Assembly: GCA_004764695.1 (NCBI GenBank)
Contig: SMSO01000031.1
Location: 7,918,761 to 7,982,760, forward strand
Direction of reading: 5' to 3'
DNA length: 64,000 bases
Source: Schizochytrium sp. TIO01
Taxonomy: Eukaryota; Protista; Bigyra: Labyrinthulomycetes
In this document: positions 804 to 13,398 of the stretch, piece by piece
How positions within the stretch are numbered: the first letter of the stretch is position 1
How the letters are laid out: each line of letters starts with the position of its first letter
Notes under the pieces: model-generated
Databases searched by the model: none
Told to the model about the DNA's origin: nothing
Seen by the model: the letters and a program-made list of their open reading frames with translations, nothing else
Translations under genes and position numbers: made by a program

Positions 804-1681
804 ACACCTGCCATTGAGTTCATTCTTTCCGCCTTCAACTCTTTCCTCTTCCCAACGTTTCCTATATCTCTAACACCATCCCATTAGCCACTTAAACACA
901 TCCCATTATTCGCTTTCCATAAACAGTCTTCTGTCCACTCTATGCTCAAAATGCTCAAAACGCTTATTAAAATTAACCCCTTGTCACTTGTCGTGTTCTA
1001 TGGATCTTTTGGACCCAGAGGTAGAGCAGCAGCAGTAGCGATAATAACAACAGCAGCTAGAATGTCAAAAGTAACTCCCACAAATCACCCATTCAAATGA
1101 TAAAGCTCATCTTTACTCAAGCTTTCTCAACGTTTCGCAGGAAATCAATACGCGAGCCCACACCTGCATCCCCATTTCAGACTCAACATCAAGACCCCCA
1201 ATCTCCGCGCTCCAAATCCACATCACATTTCATCTCCTTGCCCACTCTTCCATACATCCACTTGCTGCCCTTGAACAACCACCATAAAAAGCAGTACCTA
1301 CGTTGGTCCCACATTAGGCCCCTGTTAATGTTTAGTTGCAGCTGCTTTGGTCCCACTCATTCTTTCTAATTATAGAGAACAAAGGGAGAAAGAACTTCAT
1401 TGCAGTAGCTGGGAATAGAAGGTCCTAGTGTGTTTGTAGGGCAGCGAGAATAAGAGGTCTAAAAAGAGACCTATCAAAGTTGCGGCAGCGAGGCCTTTTA
1501 CTTGCTGTGCGGCGACAGCGTGCATTTCCGATTGCCGTGCTCCGCCGCGCCGCAGAGGCAGCAGCTCCGGGCGCTCAAATATTGCGTGGAAGGCCCGCGT
1601 CATCGTCTGCTGTGCTTTTTCTTCGCGAAAAGGCTCACTCCTGGTTGATTTCGAGCCCGAAGGCTTGAAAATCTATAAGCA

Positions 1682-2853
1682 ATGATGATGCTGCGCAGCG
1701 CCTCCTTTGCCGCCTCGCGCGGAATCCGCTCCCGCGGTGGCTCCCTTGTAGCCTCTGCCGCCAGGCCTATCGCAGCTCACCAGGCTCCCGCTCTTGCTCC
1801 GGTCCAGAGCCGCGGCTTGAAGAGCTCCGTGGTGCTCCGTGAAGGCTTCTTCGAGCGTCTCAGCAACTCGCTGCAGAGCCGCGCCGAGTCCAAGCAAGAG
1901 GCTGGCCGCCAGGAGATGGAGAAGGACCTCATTACTCTTATGAAGGATTCCGACAGCTTCCCGCTCTCTGTTTACAGGGAGGTCATCAAGGTACGTGTTT
2001 GCTTCAGCCGCAACCCATTCAATATTAGATGGATCAATTGATGATCGCAATGCTGATTTTGCGTTTGGTTTGGCATTGGTCATCTCATTCCTCGGGACTT
2101 TTGCCAACCGCATATCGTTACTTCTTTTTGTATCTGGGGTCTGAAATGAAGTTATGAGTTATCGTCTGATGATGCGAGTTTGACCTAGCCTTGTTGAACT
2201 TCGTATCAGTAAGGTTTGGATAATTCAGAACCTGGCAATTTTTGGGATTGAGACAATGTAAAGGGTACTGAGAATTACCATTCAGTTTGAAATCTATAGA
2301 GTGGGTTTTGGCGGGGTGGGAGAACTGATGGCATGACCTTATATGGTTCAATAGGAGACTAACAAAGAGTGACAATGATGAATTATTTTGATGAACATAG
2401 AACTCCGTGAAGAAGAACGAGCAGGGTGTCGCGTACTGGATCAACCGCATCCCCGGTGTGAAGCAGCAGACTGGCCAGGCTCAGACTGATGCCATGTTGA
2501 GCATCTTTGACGTGATGACCTCCAAGGAACTTAGCGGTGAGGCTGAGCTCGGCCCTGCAGAGGTGGAGCGCGTTGCCACCTCCGCTGGCGTGGAGCTCCA
2601 GGCTGTCCAGGAGCTTGTCAACACACACCGCGCCATGAGTGAGGTGCACCGCTACATTAAGCACCGCCAGAACACCAACCAGTATATCCCGGAAGACTTC
2701 CAGAGCATTATCAAGTACATGCGTGTGGACCGCGAGGCTGGTGCGCCCCAGCGTCCTCCCTTGTGGCGTGTGGCCATGCTCAAAAAGCAGTTTGATGAGC
2801 GCAACTCCTTCCGTGACCAGTACGGCCGCAAACGTCGCCAGAAGAAGTTTTAA
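1682..2853 (+). CDS. Mitochondrion-targeted protein with a stand-alone Ffh/SRP54 M (signal-peptide-binding) domain, MAP67-like (exons 1682-1990, 2401-2853)
   Basis: A phase-0 intron 1991-2400 (GTACGT...CATAG) joins ORFs 1682 and 2407 in frame. The N-terminus is an Arg/Ser/Ala-rich, acid-free presequence. FPLSVYREVIK...WINRIPGV...LSIFDVMTSKEL...VERVATSAGVELQAVQELVNTHRAM parallels the Ffh M-domain pattern FDLNDFLEQL...LMGKLPGM...AIINSMTxKER...RKRRIAxGxGxxVQDVNRLLKQFDDM. Confidence 0.75.
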
Positions 2854-3268
2854 ATCGTAAAAAAGCGCCACACACACCCTATTTTGTCCTGACTATGCGA
2901 GAGCAAGCCCAAACAAACCTTCCCTCAAAACAAAACAAAAACAAAAACAAAAACAACTGAGACTTCCCTCTACCACTCTTGCTGTACTTTCATTTCCAAT
3001 GGTGTACTGCCCTAGGGCTCTTTCTTTGACCTGATGAAGATCATGGCTTTCATCTTATTTTCTATATTCTCTTCCTCTCCTAAGTCAAGGAAAACAAGTC
3101 GTATGCCTTGTAAATCATAACTTAAGCAATCACAGCAGCAGGACAACTTCTAGAATGAGGAGTCAAGCAATAGAATTGGAGAAAATTGAGAAAATCAAGC
3201 AAATATTATTAGGTGGACCCCATGGTCCTTTGCATGCTTGTGAGATCTTGCACAGGCGCGCTACTTAC

Positions 3269-3811
3269 TTACTCCTTTTGGATTGCAAGGGTCCACTCGT
3301 AGATATTGTAGCTTGGGATAAGGCCATTCTTGTAGTACGGGTCGTTCTTGACAAACTCCTCGATGTGTTCCTTATCGTCACACTCAAAGTGGAAGACGGC
3401 GCCCTTACCCTCGTTGTATGCGCCACCGGCCTTGATGAATCCAGCCTCAAGCTGCTTTTGAGCATTGCCGAGGTGCTCAGGACGATACGGACCACGCTTC
3501 TCCAGAATTCCCTCGACGTAGTCGTCTACGCTCCTTACAAGGTGATTTTGGTTTACACGCATAGATTTGTAGATACATTGCCGTGACCACATCATTGTAA
3601 CCATTCTGACACAGTCAGTTTTCTGAGAAACTTATAAAGATACAATCTACCCATATCAATGAATGTCAACTTGCATTGAGAATATTTATAAGAACGTACA
3701 CATGAGCAAGTAGTGCTTTTCACGCACGACCTGAAGAGTAGGTGCAGCACGTCCTCCCAGGACGCGCTTGGATGCGGCAAGACCCGCGATTCTGGCGCCA
3801 GGCAAAGCCAT
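3269..3811 (-). CDS. YciI (YCII-related) domain protein, copy 1, putative mitochondrial (exons 3811-3700, 3525-3269)
   Basis: The spliced product MALPGARIAGLAASKRVLGGRAAPTLQVVREKHYLLM-YDYVEGILEKRGPYRPEHL...AGGAY...FVKNDPYYKNGL...EW carries the YciI R-x3-R-x2-HL, GA and DPY motifs. Phase-1 intron 3699-3526 (GTACGT...CGTAG). Confidence 0.9.
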
Positions 3812-5167: not shown

Positions 5168-6650
5168 GATCTCCAAACTTGAGCCAAGAACCTCTGTTTC
5201 CTACCAAGTCTTCCGCAACACTCAAGCGACCCAGCACAGAATTACACTCTACCGCCTTCTAGTCGGGCCTTGCGAACTCAGCGGCAGCCCGTCGTGAGTT
5301 CAACGCAGTTTCGAGTTTGCTGGGAGTTCGTCTTGGCAGATCCTTCGGCGCATTAAAAGGAATCATGCGAAGGTAGCACGTACGAAAAAAGGCCAGGAAG
5401 CAGCACCACCGCGAGGGCTATAGATTCGGGTAGTAGGGTCCTATGCAATGCGCGCGGTCTGGTGCGCGAGCACAGCGCGAGCGCTGTCCCTTCAGAAGAA
5501 CTGTTCGAAGAATGGGTAAATGCGAGTTTGGCACAACTTCGAGAACCAAGTTCGAGAGGTTTGCCTGTGCTGAATTGAGAATCGCGAAGACACGCATGGC
5601 ACGGAGAAGCATTCTTGAAACGGTTCCTGTGCAGAAGGAGCTTTGGTGATGGGTAGCGAGCGATTACAGCACGGAGGCGCGGGCTTCGATACCAGAGTGA
5701 TGGGAACATTCGTAGAAGGAGGCGAGTTTGCAGAAGGCCTTTGCGAGGGGTGTGGATATGGGGAGTGGAATGCGAATGGGGAACGATATGGAAAGGAAGC
5801 AAGCGCCTTGAAGACGTGGCGTGGAGCAGGAGTGCGGAGAAGAAGTTGAGGCAAAACTGCAACTGCGATCTGGGAAGAGGAAAGCGAAGAGGAATTCCAG
5901 AGAACCGAAGAACTGAAGAACTGATGTCGCTATCAGCCCCTCTCCTCGAACAGACCAAGGTGCAGCCTAAGACGGGCGATGACAAAGACTCGGCCAAGCC
6001 TCAGAAATGTTGTGGAGAACCGGAGGCTCCGGAGAACGAAGTGGCTTCGGTCACTAGCTCAAGAGAGAAGACTCCCAAGCGAAGCCTGCGGCAAGATTTT
6101 GGCCAGGTCATGAAGGCGATGGGTTCGCGAAGAATCTGAGCGGCGGTTTGCCACTGCAGCCTGGATAAACTATCCCCTGTCTTTGTCTTTTGCATACTAT
6201 TCTGCAACCTTGGCAAAGCCAGGCTCAAGTTAGGTCCTTCAGAGAATAACTCCTTTTTCATAAATCGTATATTACCCATTAGGTATCGCTCATTCGTACT
6301 TGCCCTGTGGACATTTATTAGCTGATTGTCTTGCTCTTGCTCTTGCGCTCGCATTGCACAACAAGTGCTAGTGAAGGTGCAATGCAACAAGCAGTTTAAG
6401 ACATGCGGATGCGATTGCACCCAGGCCTATAATCCCACGCCCCTCAATTTTGTGGAGGTAGGTACCTACGTACTGGTCTCCTTCCAAATAGAAACCCTCG
6501 TGTCCCTTCAAGGGAAGCTACCGTGGCCAAGATCATCATGACGTCTTACAATGCTGAGTTTTCGCATGACAAATATCCCTGAGGAGCAATTGCTTACAGA
6601 GCATACCCGATACTTGAGGAGAATGCCATCCGTGCCATACATCGTTTCGA

Positions 6651-7702: not shown

Positions 7703-10627
7703 ATGCCATCCGGCGACGCGAGCGGCGGCGGGAGCGGCGGCGGTGGGCGCCAGCGCGGCCCACTGTCTGGTGGTCGCAAGTCCAAGGAGAAGCCCTTCCT
7801 GAGCAAGAAAGCTGCTTCCCTCGTGGCGCCTTCACAGCTAACACCATCTTGGAGCCCAGATCTCATGGCGACCCACGGTGCAAACATTACCTCTTCGCAG
7901 CAAACACAGAACATTTCTAGCACCTTTTATATCCCGCAGCCTCCGTCGCCGTCCGCTGCCACGCTCGCCAGAGCTACGTCTGTAGGTCATGAGTCCATAG
8001 CGTCGAGCGCCGCGGCACCAACATCGATGGCCTCCGCAACTTCGAGCATCAACCTTGCTATAGGTCAGGCAGCTGGCTCAGGAAATGCTGCCAGCTCTGG
8101 AACTGCTGCAAGCTCTGGCTCAGCGCAACCTGCATCTGTACGGCAAACGATTTCAGGCTTGCAAAAGAAGGTCTCGAGTGGAGGCATTCGAGGAGTTGTG
8201 CTGGAAAGTGTCAACTATCTGGCCTCCGGTCCTCGATGCGTGGCGAGTTGTAGCGCCGATCTTGGAGCCCTCTCAGATCTCCGCGCGCCTCAAAGTATCA
8301 TCCGCAAGGTTGCTAAAGGGTTCACATACAGGGTCTACATCGATTACGTTTTGGGAGCGACGGATATCCAACATGCTACGGTACCTAAGTTCAGGATTCA
8401 CCACATCACGAATGCGAAAGAGCTTCACTGCCAAAGACTTTTGGGGTCACTGCAGAACTTGCTACAAAAATATTCTGCTAGGAGAGTCCCAAATCACACA
8501 GAAGCGGTATTGAGGAACATTGTTTCGCATATTACACACGATGTCAGGGAATATATCATGCGTATGGAGAATGGAGAATCACTGACAGAGGAGGCAGATA
8601 TACCGGCAACGCCACCAATCCATGCGTCGGCGTTTAGGTCAGGACATAATAATATTAGTAGCACGATGTTTCAAATGGAGATGCAGCAGGATACACAGAA
8701 TCGAAACCGAGCAAGACCCCTTGCAGGGATGACTGCGAGGCGAACCACGTCTACGGGGTCCACAGCATCCAATCCATATGACCCGCTTGCGAGGAAACCG
8801 AGCGCCATTGAAAATGTACGCACACCGAGCGAAAGTGGCCTGAGCCACCGCAGCTCCTCGACAGACTCGTCTGGTATGGACACCGCGTTTCAACAACCGT
8901 GTCCTCGCTTTGCAGGTGCCACCTTCAGTGGACCTGGACTACTTGTGGCATACAGCAGTGGTATTACTGAACGTCTGCAGCAGATCGCCAACAGCCCGCG
9001 CTCATCGCGAAGGCATCATATATCACGATTCATCTCACGTGATCAGCAATTAATCGATGATGAATCCCCCGATACTGCGGGGGGGCTCCCGCGTACCTAT
9101 CGAGAACTGACAGAGATGCTTCAAAGCGAGAGTAGCTTCGGTGCATCGCGCCATAGTGGGCTAGATAAGCGTCTTATTCAAAATGGAGTCTCAATCACTT
9201 CGGCTCCATCTATGGAGGATGCCCTAATTGGACCGCGAACAAACGGTAAGCTTGGCATAGCCGAGGACATCACAAGCGAGGACCTGTTTGACTTAAGCGT
9301 TCGTCGTGCATCTCAGCAGAATCTTATACAGCAGCAGCAACAGCAACTATTGCAGCAACAACAGTCTTCGCAGTCTCTTCAAGCCCAGACAAGCCAAGGC
9401 CAAGACAGCACCGTAGAAGGCGCGTCATCGCTCTCACCAAGGAATCCGGCTGGTTCGCAGCAGTCCACCCCAGTTCTCGACACATCCTCAAACCTTGACG
9501 ATGGCACGTTCTTGACCAAAGATAGCTCCTCTGTTCTGCAGCGACGTGTGGTTATTCTGGACGCCAGTCTGCTGAGCCCAATCCAGCGTTTCCTCGGCCG
9601 TGCTCTTCGCATAGGTGCTCTTAACTCGCTACCAAATAAAGACCTTGCCACGCAACTAATGCTTAAGGATGCACACTCTGGAATGACCCCGAATGCGAAA
9701 CGACTTCAGAATGGCATTGAAGGAGGGGAGGATACAATTCAACGAGATAAAAATGATGTTCTTGGTAGTGGCGTACATGATGACTTCGATGAAGACGGAA
9801 ACAACGAGGTTACCGAAGAAGACGAGGATGAAAGCGAGGATGATGAGGACGAGTCTTTTGAAGCTTTATTATGCTGGTGGGACGACTTTAGCGACGAGCC
9901 CACTTCACAGTGGGATGGCCTTCCTCTTCACACAGCAAATATGCAGGCCAGTCACACTGTCGGACGCTTTGATCTCGTACAAACGTGGCTTATGATGAGG
10001 TGCATCTGTAGCCCCGATATTGCCGAGTATGAGAACAATTTTACTCGTGTCCTTGGATCTAGCTCACGCAGTGCAGAACTTGGGGAACGATGGGCAATGC
10101 ACCCTTGTGGGCGAAGGCTCATTAGCCGGATTATTGACGAGCTAGCTCGAACTAAGGATGTACAAACACTCGCAACACTGTCTTGTGTTCTGGAGGAGGA
10201 GTCATCACACGATAAGTGGAGTCACACCTTACCATTAATGGACCCATCACACAAGGCGCAGTATGACCGTTTCCGCCGTGCGTATGCAAGCATTCTTCAC
10301 CGCTGGGGTCTTAATACCAAACGCGCCGAAGTTATGAAATACGTTGACCCTGATCCTTCTCTTGTGGAAGATGAAATGGTGAAAATTGCTTCTGCATGTG
10401 GGATTTGTTCATCTCAGAGCCCAAGTATGCAGTGCGATAAGCCTTCCTGTCGTGCGAAAGGGTCGGGCCTCCAGTGTACCATTTGTAATCGTATGGTCCT
10501 CGGTTTATGCACCTTTTGTCCCTTGTGTGGCCATGGAGGCCATGCGCAGCACATGAGCGACTGGTTTGCCGAATCTGACGAATGCCCTTCTGGGTGCGGC
10601 TGTCGCTGTGGAGAACTGATCAAATAA
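7703..10627 (+). CDS. WDR59: GATOR2/SEACAT subunit WDR59 (Sea3)-like protein lacking the N-terminal WD40 region
   Basis: 974-aa ORF. It contains PCPRFAGATFSGPGLLV (WDR59 PxPRxxGAxFxxxGxLV), WAMHPCGRRLI, DVQTLATLSCV, YASILHRWGL and the C-terminal zinc/RING region CTICNRMVLGLCTFCPLCGHGGHAQHMSDWF...CPSGCGCRC. Confidence 0.85.
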   Translation: MPSGDASGGGSGGGGRQRGPLSGGRKSKEKPFLSKKAASLVAPSQLTPSWSPDLMATHGANITSSQQTQNISSTFYIPQPPSPSAATLARATSVGHESIASSAAAPTSMASATSSINLAIGQAAGSGNAASSGTAASSGSAQPASVRQTISGLQKKVSSGGIRGVVLESVNYLASGPRCVASCSADLGALSDLRAPQSIIRKVAKGFTYRVYIDYVLGATDIQHATVPKFRIHHITNAKELHCQRLLGSLQNLLQKYSARRVPNHTEAVLRNIVSHITHDVREYIMRMENGESLTEEADIPATPPIHASAFRSGHNNISSTMFQMEMQQDTQNRNRARPLAGMTARRTTSTGSTASNPYDPLARKPSAIENVRTPSESGLSHRSSSTDSSGMDTAFQQPCPRFAGATFSGPGLLVAYSSGITERLQQIANSPRSSRRHHISRFISRDQQLIDDESPDTAGGLPRTYRELTEMLQSESSFGASRHSGLDKRLIQNGVSITSAPSMEDALIGPRTNGKLGIAEDITSEDLFDLSVRRASQQNLIQQQQQQLLQQQQSSQSLQAQTSQGQDSTVEGASSLSPRNPAGSQQSTPVLDTSSNLDDGTFLTKDSSSVLQRRVVILDASLLSPIQRFLGRALRIGALNSLPNKDLATQLMLKDAHSGMTPNAKRLQNGIEGGEDTIQRDKNDVLGSGVHDDFDEDGNNEVTEEDEDESEDDEDESFEALLCWWDDFSDEPTSQWDGLPLHTANMQASHTVGRFDLVQTWLMMRCICSPDIAEYENNFTRVLGSSSRSAELGERWAMHPCGRRLISRIIDELARTKDVQTLATLSCVLEEESSHDKWSHTLPLMDPSHKAQYDRFRRAYASILHRWGLNTKRAEVMKYVDPDPSLVEDEMVKIASACGICSSQSPSMQCDKPSCRAKGSGLQCTICNRMVLGLCTFCPLCGHGGHAQHMSDWFAESDECPSGCGCRCGELIK

Positions 10628-10870: not shown

Positions 10871-13398
10871 TTAACAGCTTGTCGCTGATGTAGGCCGTTG
10901 TTTTCCAGCAGTGCGCATGAATAGTTCCCGAGTCCAGCGAAGCTGTGGGGGGGAGTTATCTTGGTTCCACTTCTTTGCGCAGTCCCAATTGCAAAATTGA
11001 CCAATTCCGTCCTGGTGAAATCGTCCGTAGTCTTTAGGAATGGAGACCCATGCGTTGGATTTTTTCAGAAGTCTCCGCTGACAATTGTCGCACTTAAATT
11101 GAGACTTACGGTCTACGAATTGTCGTTTCTTTCCAGTTCCCTTTTTGTGTTGTTTCCTATGGTTCTGTTCGGTTGCATTTGAATGGACAGTTTGTCGTGC
11201 TTGCTTCCCTATGCCATTTTCTGCTGCTAGAGGCACCATGCTCTCGTCTCCTCCGTCAAAGTCTTGAAGCTCTGCGACATCATCAGCATGCAATGATGCC
11301 GTAAGACTCGTTACCGAAGAAAGAGTAGCTTCGTATTTTCTTTCAGAAGCTGTCGAAGTATACATTCCAGATAATGCTCCTGCAGAAGCCGTGGTTTTCA
11401 GCCTGTTTTGCTTAGCTCGTGCAAGTGTTTGCTTAGCTAGACTGTGCGCAAGACCAGCACTGCGATGAGCTGTTTGAAAACACGTCCATACCTTTTGCTC
11501 TTCACTCCGCCATGAACTCATAAGACGCTGCCGTTGTAGCTCCCTTTTGTCCCTTAAAATATTCAGCGTTCGGTTTTGCGTAACCTGCAAATTTGTTACT
11601 GCAGTTTCAATATTCTGGAGGCAAGTTTGCAACGCACGTTCACGCTCTTGTGCAGCTCGCTGCTCGATTTTTTCTTGCAAGTACACTGCCTGCGTATATT
11701 CCTGGGCCTTGACAAGACTTAGTTCGCGCATTTTCATGTCCATGATTGTAGCGGAGAATTGTAATGGCTTATTCCTAAATGCTTCGAACAGGTTTACTTG
11801 TAAGAGACGTTGAGCAGTAATCTGTTCTTTCTTGAGATTTTTTATTTGCCTTTGCGTTTCCTCATTAAACGCTGTTATTTTTGCATCCCACTTTCGCTGG
11901 AGAGCATTGAGGCAATCGCGTTCCTGTCGACTTAAGGCTTTTAAAATTTTGTTATGCTTTTCGACTGCTTCCTTTTCGTGAGCCGCAGTAAGCTCGCCAT
12001 CCAAGCTGTGCATTTTCGCTAAGACCTTTGCTGCATCCTGATATTCTCGTTCCTGACTGAGTAATTCAAGCTTACGGTTTAGTTTCTCCATACGCCTTGC
12101 TTTAGCAAATGTTGCAGTGCTTGGACGCATCAAAGATTCTAATTCTATACTTGGTTGTTTCAAACGGAACGGGCTTTGAGAAATCGGATCCGCAAGCAGC
12201 TCTAGTGATGGACGTGATTTGTAATCAGAACTTATTGACTCTTGCATATCGCCTGCGTTAATACCATTCTCTTTCTTGGGAATGCCGATCCCATCAGTCA
12301 ACTCTTCTGATGTAAGTTCAACTGGTGATATGGCAATGTCTTTCTGGGAGGGACCTTCTGGTGCAGTTTGGCTCTTGTCAATTGTTGATTCAATATGAAG
12401 GCCTTCTTGCTCTGAACTGATAACTCGGGATTTCTCTGATTCACCTCGCTTAGCTTCTTCCTCCGTTGATGAATCCTCGTAGTCATTTGCTTCTTTATCC
12501 AAGCGCAACGCGGCTTGTCTAATAATATTATCAACTTCGTTGTCAGGTTTCAAGACAATTTTCTCTTTGGTTGAAGGTTGTTCTTTAAATGAAGGTGGAG
12601 GGGTCAGAGTTGGAGGCAGTTGTATCAAGTTCTTATCGCTCTGGATTTGCTGGTCTTTATCTTCTTGAATTGCACCAGTCTCATTTTCAGCGTTCTCCTC
12701 TTTATTGCCTCGCGCAGTGGTAACTGTACTTGGACTTAATTTAAAAAGATCGTCGACATCTCCGTCAATATCGTCAATACCACGTGCTGTTGTGACTGCG
12801 CTTGGGGACCCTCCGAATAGGTCATCAACATTTCCCTCAACTTCATCGATCCCTTCGCACAGAGCCGCGAAGCAGTCTTCGTTGTCCTCATTCCCTTCAT
12901 CGTTTTCAGCATCGATTCCCATGATCTCAGAAGCTACTTCTCTTCCTGCTGCCTCGCCTGGAGCTTTGGTGAAATCTTTGCCTATGTCCAAATCAGAGCA
13001 GAAAGCCACTCTACCTTGAAAAGTTCGAGAACTACAGTAATGAACTCTTCGGCAGGTAAGCCTCCACCACGGTATGTGTGTTGCAACCAACTTTACCTCC
13101 CAACCGGCATGAAGATCAGAGCCAACTAGCCTGCAAAGTAGACAAGTAGTCTCGATATTATATAAAACTTGGCAAAGGTTCGCTCACAGGCAACTCACAC
13201 TACTAGATGTTCGCATTCATTCACGTGCTATTTATGTATCCAAAGTACTCACTAATGCTCTTTCCCAATTCATGTCTTATACAACTACTACTGACCATAG
13301 AAAGCATCTCGACTTTGCTCAAGTGGGGTTCCAAAGGTGTGCACCACTCACCTCCGCGCTGCGAAAGATGTCCCCGCGAACGTTCCTGAGGACCCCAT
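10871..13398 (-). CDS. Hypothetical coiled-coil protein with C-terminal CxxC...FCxxxC zinc finger (probable exons 13398-13352, 13130-10871)
   Basis: 739+ aa open frame with an acidic N-half, a long heptad region and CDNC-x~27-FCNWDC. The listed start is non-ATG. A phase-2 intron 13351-13131 (GTGAGT...TTTGCAG) links an upstream ATG exon (MGSSGTFAG...) in frame; this first exon is inferred. Confidence 0.7.

Follow-up and report, generated by a model that had tools for sequence, protein, structure and literature searches.

The gene at positions 1682-2853 on the forward strand is very probably (with a probability of about 0.85) a single-copy nuclear MAP67/mL105 gene, whose product would sit on the large subunit of the mitochondrial ribosome at the polypeptide exit. 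Splicing and expression of the gene are shown below, and its product has the fold of the SRP54 M domain together with a C-terminal extension of the mL105 type. MAP67 (Pyrih et al., 2021, Mol Biol Evol; PMC8321541), also described as the mitoribosomal protein mL105 (Tobiasson and Amunts, 2020, eLife; PMC7326499; PDB 6Z1P chain AT; and, for Polytomella magna, PMC9576764), is a mitochondrial descendant of the M domain of Ffh that has lost both the N and G domains and the residues by which SRP RNA is bound.

The window, meaning the whole stretch of DNA that was analysed, comprises 64,000 nucleotides (C30:7918761-7982760), and the genome searched was the corresponding 64.07-Mb assembly of 37 contigs. 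Exons were searched separately, and full-length analyses were carried out on a public database entry, P0001 (252 aa; JGI and Logan sources), which is the spliced product read from the second Met. The features of the gene are as follows, in window positions.

1525-1681, forward strand: 5' untranslated region; the start is approximate, as transcript contigs begin at 1525-1601
1682-2041, forward strand: open reading frame of 119 aa
1682-1990, forward strand: coding part of exon 1, 103 codons; encodes the putative presequence, the long helix of the linker and the beginning of the first M-domain helix
1682-1840, forward strand: putative mitochondrial presequence; the first 53 residues hold 7 R, 1 K, no D or E, 11 A and 9 S
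1847-1948, forward strand: long helix, P0001 residues 55-88, aligning with the linker on the N-terminal side of the Ffh/SRP54 M domain
1991-2400, forward strand: intron of 410 nt, GTACGT...CATAG, phase 0
2401-2853, forward strand: coding part of exon 2, 150 codons plus TAA (2851-2853)
2407-2853, forward strand: open reading frame of 148 aa
2422-2472, forward strand: finger-loop-like segment, P0001 residues 110-126 (W115, PG motif), pLDDT about 71
2440-2643, forward strand: match to Pfam SRP_SPB (PF02978), profile positions 24-89 of 91
2563-2589, forward strand: VERVATSAG, degenerate counterpart of the SRP-RNA-binding RRxRIAxGSG of Ffh, placed by alignment to E. coli Ffh 2xxa_A
2644-2850, forward strand: MAP67/mL105-specific C-terminal extension (HRYIKHR..., near-invariant P199, terminal helix 223-251)
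2854-3100, forward strand: 3' untranslated region; contigs continue beyond 3100

Gene structure and transcript

Contigs from four public runs, each belonging to a different study, were aligned on 1500-3100, and in all four runs they skip exactly the 410 bases from 1991 to 2400 (GT..AG). The proposal of the initial annotation, that two open reading frames are spliced in phase 0 across 1990/2401, is thus borne out by the junction in these contigs as well as by P0001, which a script comparison found to start with the translation of exon 1 and to end with that of exon 2, zero residues being left over. The depth of the spliced form versus the intron was 950 versus 2.2, 1302 versus 9.4 and 167-180 versus 26 in three of the runs; in the fourth (X14), exons were covered at a depth of 29.5 and the intron had no cover. 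That these runs derive from RNA is a guess, but they resemble transcriptomes, since the depth of the joined form exceeds that of the intron by a factor of 7 to 430 and the assemblies measure 17-47 Mb. It should be noted that run X1 contained an intron-bearing contig at a depth of 26 versus 77-180 for the exons, compared with an intron ratio of 0.2-0.7% in the other runs, and that this high ratio could reflect intron retention or carry-over of DNA in the library.

The spliced protein is 253 aa long. Exon 1 ends with codon 103 (AAG, 1988-1990), at the border ...ATCAAG/GTACGT; many in-frame stops lie inside the intron (1991-2400), and an in-frame TAA (1676-1678) stands just 5' of the first ATG (1682), with no ATG in the 5' untranslated stretch that was read (about 1525-1681). 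When all six frames of the entire 64-Mb genome were searched with the family profile, exon 1 matched profile positions 18-73 (E=7.9e-8) and exon 2 matched positions 76-185 (E=1.2e-32); because the second match takes up where the first leaves off, the two exons are consecutive parts of a single family profile. The intron interrupts the M domain itself, splitting its first helix as FPLSVYREVIK/NSVKK.

Several smaller observations were made along the transcript. All four runs carry C for T at position 2544, the third base of an Ala codon (a synonymous change), and three runs carry T for C at position 1594 in the 5' untranslated region and A for G at position 2214, inside the intron; at all three positions the assembly and the cultures that were sequenced seem to differ by strain or allele. 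A low-complexity run of the CAAAA/CAAAAA type at 2922-2965, in the 3' untranslated region, was masked as a repeat in read mapping. Two antisense open reading frames, 1673-2113 and 2383-2877, were set aside as shadows of the coding strand that lack support. Convergent to the gene lies a reverse-strand open reading frame of 111 aa (3269-3604) with a YCII-related domain (PF03795, E=3.8e-9), and since contigs of the MAP67 transcript continue for as much as about 600 nt beyond 3100, it is probable that the two genes overlap at their 3' ends or that the assembly fused them. Further along the window, an uninterrupted forward-strand open reading frame of 974 aa (7703-10627) carries a RING/U-box-like zinc-binding domain (PF17120, E=2.1e-11) at its end and has no Pfam match outside that domain; two reverse-strand open reading frames, 5353-5997 (214 aa) and 10871-13090 (739 aa), were unmatched in Pfam at E<=0.001.

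Fold, motifs and family

Exon 2 by itself matched PF02978 with E=1.5e-8 and 35.4 bits, above the curated cut-off of 27. When the single sequence was compared with solved structures, the best PDB match was chain 6z1p_AT (E=5.6e-5), the "signal peptide-binding domain protein" of the Tetrahymena mitoribosome that is known as mL105; E. coli Ffh followed with E=0.027. A profile built from 42 sequences (A1) matched mL105 at 7.5e-30 over positions 32-185 and E. coli Ffh at 9.6e-20, the match to Ffh ending at position 155. The additional 30 profile positions (consensus HkWLrrRkkegkplPes.eel; HRYIKHRQNTNQYIPEDF in this protein) form a C-terminal extension that is common to mL105 and missing from Ffh.

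The structural comparison points in the same direction. An AlphaFold model computed from A1 (mean pLDDT 81) is helical beyond residue 46, and Foldseek ranked a large-subunit chain of the Toxoplasma mitoribosome, 9i05_AI, and Tetrahymena 6z1p_AT at the top, so that the M-domain-like region recognised in the initial annotation is found again both in Pfam and among M-domain chains of mitoribosomes. In VIA-align, 9i05_AI gave Z 13.4 (rmsd 2.8 over 136 residues, model 70-218) and 6z1p_AT gave Z 13.2 (rmsd 2.3 over 133 residues, model 78-218), followed by the M domains of SRP54/Ffh at Z 10-12 (model residues about 91-190) and by chains 8apn_Ub and 8a22_Ub of Polytomella magna and 7pkt_S of Chlamydomonas reinhardtii at Z 7-8. 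For helical proteins a Z under about 13 may be due to chance, and the fold match counts only because independent sequence evidence agrees with it. Taken together, the profile and structure matches span residues about 60-218, with identities to characterised members of 14-17% in the structural alignments, and the C-terminal extension is present in the Toxoplasma chain as it is in mL105.

Upstream of the M domain, the long helix aligns with residues 305-340 of E. coli Ffh and with residues 303-340 of the organism's own SRP54; sub-threshold Pfam matches to CENP-T_C and DPF1-3_N in this helical linker were rejected as compositional noise. The first 53 residues, with eight basic and no acidic residues, have a composition that fits a matrix presequence, and residues 1-46 are predicted to be disordered (AlphaFold pLDDT below about 50), in keeping with the presequence-like N-terminus that had been noted before; mitochondrial targeting is suggested by this composition. 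The motifs quoted in the initial annotation (RIPGV, IFDVMTxKE, VERVATSAG and the RKRRQKKF tail) are all present, the first two as AYWINRIPGV and IFDVMTSKE, and W115 is nearly invariant, being conserved in at least 90% of the family. There is no clear enrichment in Met, with 7 of the 200 mature residues. The degeneration of the SRP-RNA motifs was likewise read correctly: in the alignment to E. coli Ffh, NSMT is replaced by DVMT and SRKRRIAAGSG by AEVERVATSAG, a change that leaves one of four basic residues in the RNA-binding cluster and removes the GSG motif. The family consensus at this motif, keRIAaasG, is stripped in the same manner. The basic tail (GRKRRQKKF, 2824-2850) is a family trait too, most members having 6-10 Lys/Arg within their last 25 residues. 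The lack of an NG GTPase domain, also part of the earlier description, agrees with the failure of PF02881 (N) and PF00448 (G) to match either the exons at E up to 10 or P0001 at E up to 0.01.

When 1.84 billion representative proteins were searched exhaustively with phmmer, 41 relatives came back, each 137-271 aa long and 20-33% identical. SRP_SPB was matched independently by 40 of the 41, as it was by P0001, and since all are short and nearly all match this domain, the relatives are stand-alone M-domain proteins rather than fragments of SRP54. One of them, P0019, a direct match (E=3.1e-5), has the same sequence as CEP00646.1 of Plasmodiophora brassicae, which Pyrih et al. list in Table S7 as a MAP67 reference (PMC8321541); this confirms the link to MAP67 that the initial annotation had proposed. 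Most reference MAP67 proteins are mitochondrial by TargetP prediction, and stramenopile members were already catalogued from Blastocystis, Phytophthora and Ectocarpus (PMC8321541). A "P..PxW" stretch beyond the conserved core is common to only a few close relatives (P0005, P0011 and P0031). The authors of the family consider the M domain too divergent for a meaningful phylogeny with Ffh and SRP54 (PMC8321541), and the identities found here are 14-25%. Judged by its sequence, then, the protein is a member of the MAP67/mL105 family, and mL105 is a nearer relative of it than any SRP54 or Ffh is.

These data speak to the reading in which the gene would be a functionless, decaying or truncated copy of cytosolic SRP54 or of a former plastid cpSRP54. 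The presence of an M domain and nothing else of SRP54 could be taken in this sense, as could a weak BLASTP match to the organism's own SRP54 (22% identity, E=3e-5), but the frame is open in both exons, the transcript is spliced and abundant, and proteins of comparable length make up the eukaryote-wide family to which this one belongs. It is also nearer to mL105 than to SRP54 or Ffh, and it carries a putative presequence and a family-specific C-terminal extension, neither of which occurs in SRP54. Such an origin is largely refuted and hardly credible.

SRP components elsewhere in the genome

Six-frame searches of the genome found SRP_SPB at two loci only, namely this gene (35.8 bits) and an SRP54 gene, and found SRP54-type GTPase domains only in that same SRP54 and in one further protein. 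The SRP54 gene (C31:195169-196200) is intron-less and encodes 534 aa with the N-G-M order starting from residue 6 and no presequence, as in a cytosolic protein. The other protein (C35:1315054-1315662; 577 aa) carries SRP-alpha_N and is for this reason identified as SR-alpha. No second copy of MAP67 was found with the family profile in six frames across the whole genome, so the gene is single copy. The search for mtFfh and mtFtsY that had been suggested in the initial annotation, again in six frames across the whole genome, found neither, and the plastid-type components cpSRP54 and cpFtsY were not found in the genome either, which fits a non-photosynthetic organism. A bacterial small SRP RNA was not found in the genome, a weak negative given that 52 of 4214 candidates were scored. 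From these searches, MAP67 appears to be the organism's only organellar SRP relic.

It is very improbable, given this inventory, that the protein works as one part of a complete mitochondrial SRP alongside an undetected mtFfh NG protein, mtFtsY and SRP RNA. Goniomonas carries MAP67 and mtFfh together (PMC8321541), which makes such an arrangement conceivable in principle; the SRP54-type GTPase domains of this genome, however, are confined to cytosolic SRP54 and SR-alpha, the search for the small SRP RNA points the same way with the low weight just given, and the RNA-binding basic cluster and GSG motif have been lost from the protein itself.

Among the ribosomal proteins, a candidate mitochondrial uL23 was found at C33:2147246-2147446 (L010, 1453-1776, forward strand; Ribosomal_L23, 72.5 bits); the cytosolic uL23 is a separate gene on C31 (L011).

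Proposed role at the polypeptide exit and comparison with known systems

The M domain of Ffh sits at the exit of bacterial ribosomes. The large-subunit location of MAP67/mL105 is known from orthologues (PMC7326499; PMC9576764; PDB 9I05, 9G6K, 8APN and 7PKT). In Tetrahymena, mL105 lies at the tunnel exit near H7, with its C-terminal helix inside the tunnel, where it makes contact with the hairpin of bL23m and would meet the nascent chain (PMC7326499). In Polytomella, mL105 occupies the same place, held through extensions of bL24m and uL29m, and it contacts density assigned to the Oxa1 insertase at the position taken by mL45 in mammals (PMC9576764). Perkinsus mL105 co-migrates with the mitoribosome (PMC13623125), and MAP67 is essential in Toxoplasma and Plasmodium (PMC8321541). 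Among the species with solved structures the partners contacted vary, and most of the contact goes through rRNA. The role at the mitoribosomal exit tunnel put forward in the initial annotation agrees with the cryo-EM structures of the Tetrahymena and Polytomella orthologues. For the protein described here, localisation and ribosome binding are deduced from these orthologues, and details may differ because identity is only 14-17% to characterised members and 20-33% to the nearest sequence relatives.

By homology, the precursor would be imported by means of its Arg-, Ala- and Ser-rich presequence, which would then be removed, leaving a mature protein of about 200 residues as a constituent of the large subunit at the polypeptide exit. 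Stable binding to the exit would come from the C-terminal extension and the basic tail, with the C-terminal helix and the tail reaching toward the tunnel and its surroundings, and the face formed by the groove and the finger loop would receive hydrophobic nascent chains. In this manner the mature protein could help to couple the ribosome to the Oxa1 insertase of the inner membrane, and it would act without a GTPase cycle, a receptor or an RNA. The handling of nascent chains by MAP67/mL105 is a proposal even in model species, and the sequence examined here offers no hint of a function other than that of the family.

The alternative is a soluble role in the matrix: the protein would be a chaperone or targeting factor for hydrophobic presequence- or signal-like segments, acting transiently or post-translationally rather than as a stable ribosomal protein. 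The architecture of the M-domain groove is kept, and MAP67 has gained SecA C-terminal domains in other lineages, a hint of post-translational targeting (PMC8321541). Against this, the nearest solved relatives in both sequence and fold are large-subunit chains of mitoribosomes from two distant lineages, those of Tetrahymena and Toxoplasma, although the chains of Polytomella and Chlamydomonas reach no more than a weak Z of 7-8, and the C-terminal extension that enters the tunnel in Tetrahymena is conserved in this protein. A soluble factor is accordingly considered unlikely, and a stable place on the large subunit is the preferred reading.

The novelty implied by the initial annotation does not hold. 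An SRP vestige free of RNA and GTPase at the mitoribosomal exit was published in 2020-2022, with cryo-EM structures, as were the family itself, its origin from mtFfh and its wide distribution, stramenopiles included. The gene is a plain orthologue, with a gene model that is already public and has a Pfam domain attached. It adds one more expressed MAP67/mL105 orthologue, apparently from a stramenopile of the labyrinthulomycete type, and agrees with the published view of an Ffh-derived protein that the last eukaryotic common ancestor already had and that most lineages other than animals and fungi have kept. Since the gene is the sole organellar SRP remnant, single copy, highly expressed and simple in structure, the organism, probably a culturable thraustochytrid, might possibly serve as a test system for the binding of signal-like N-termini in the M-domain groove and their hand-over to Oxa1, a suggestion that we offer tentatively.

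Set beside known systems, the protein most resembles other members of MAP67/mL105, with which it shares a putative presequence, a stand-alone Ffh-type M domain without N or G domains, a degenerate RNA-binding motif, a C-terminal extension with the conserved H-x-W/Y-[LI]-x-x-R...P motif, a basic tail and a similar length (about 190-270 aa). It differs from them in its identity of 20-33% to any relative outside its own cluster, in having RVA where the family has RIA, and in lacking the SecA-type C-terminal addition of the versions from Chloroplastida and Centrohelida. With bacterial Ffh and the mtFfh of Naegleria, Goniomonas and others it has in common the M-domain fold (Z 10-12), with its finger-loop-like PG segment and helix-turn-helix core, and, by homology, the position at the ribosomal exit; in contrast to these proteins, it has no NG GTPase domain, has lost the SRP-RNA-binding residues, bears an extra C-terminal extension and is encoded in a genome without an FtsY partner. 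Finally, mL45/Mba1, the membrane anchor of the opisthokont mitoribosome, holds the place at the tunnel exit that the present protein would take by homology, and for both the suggested task is to connect the mitoribosome with the inner membrane and Oxa1 (PMC9576764), but the fold of mL45/Mba1 is unrelated (Tim44-like), making it an analogue rather than a homologue of the protein described here.
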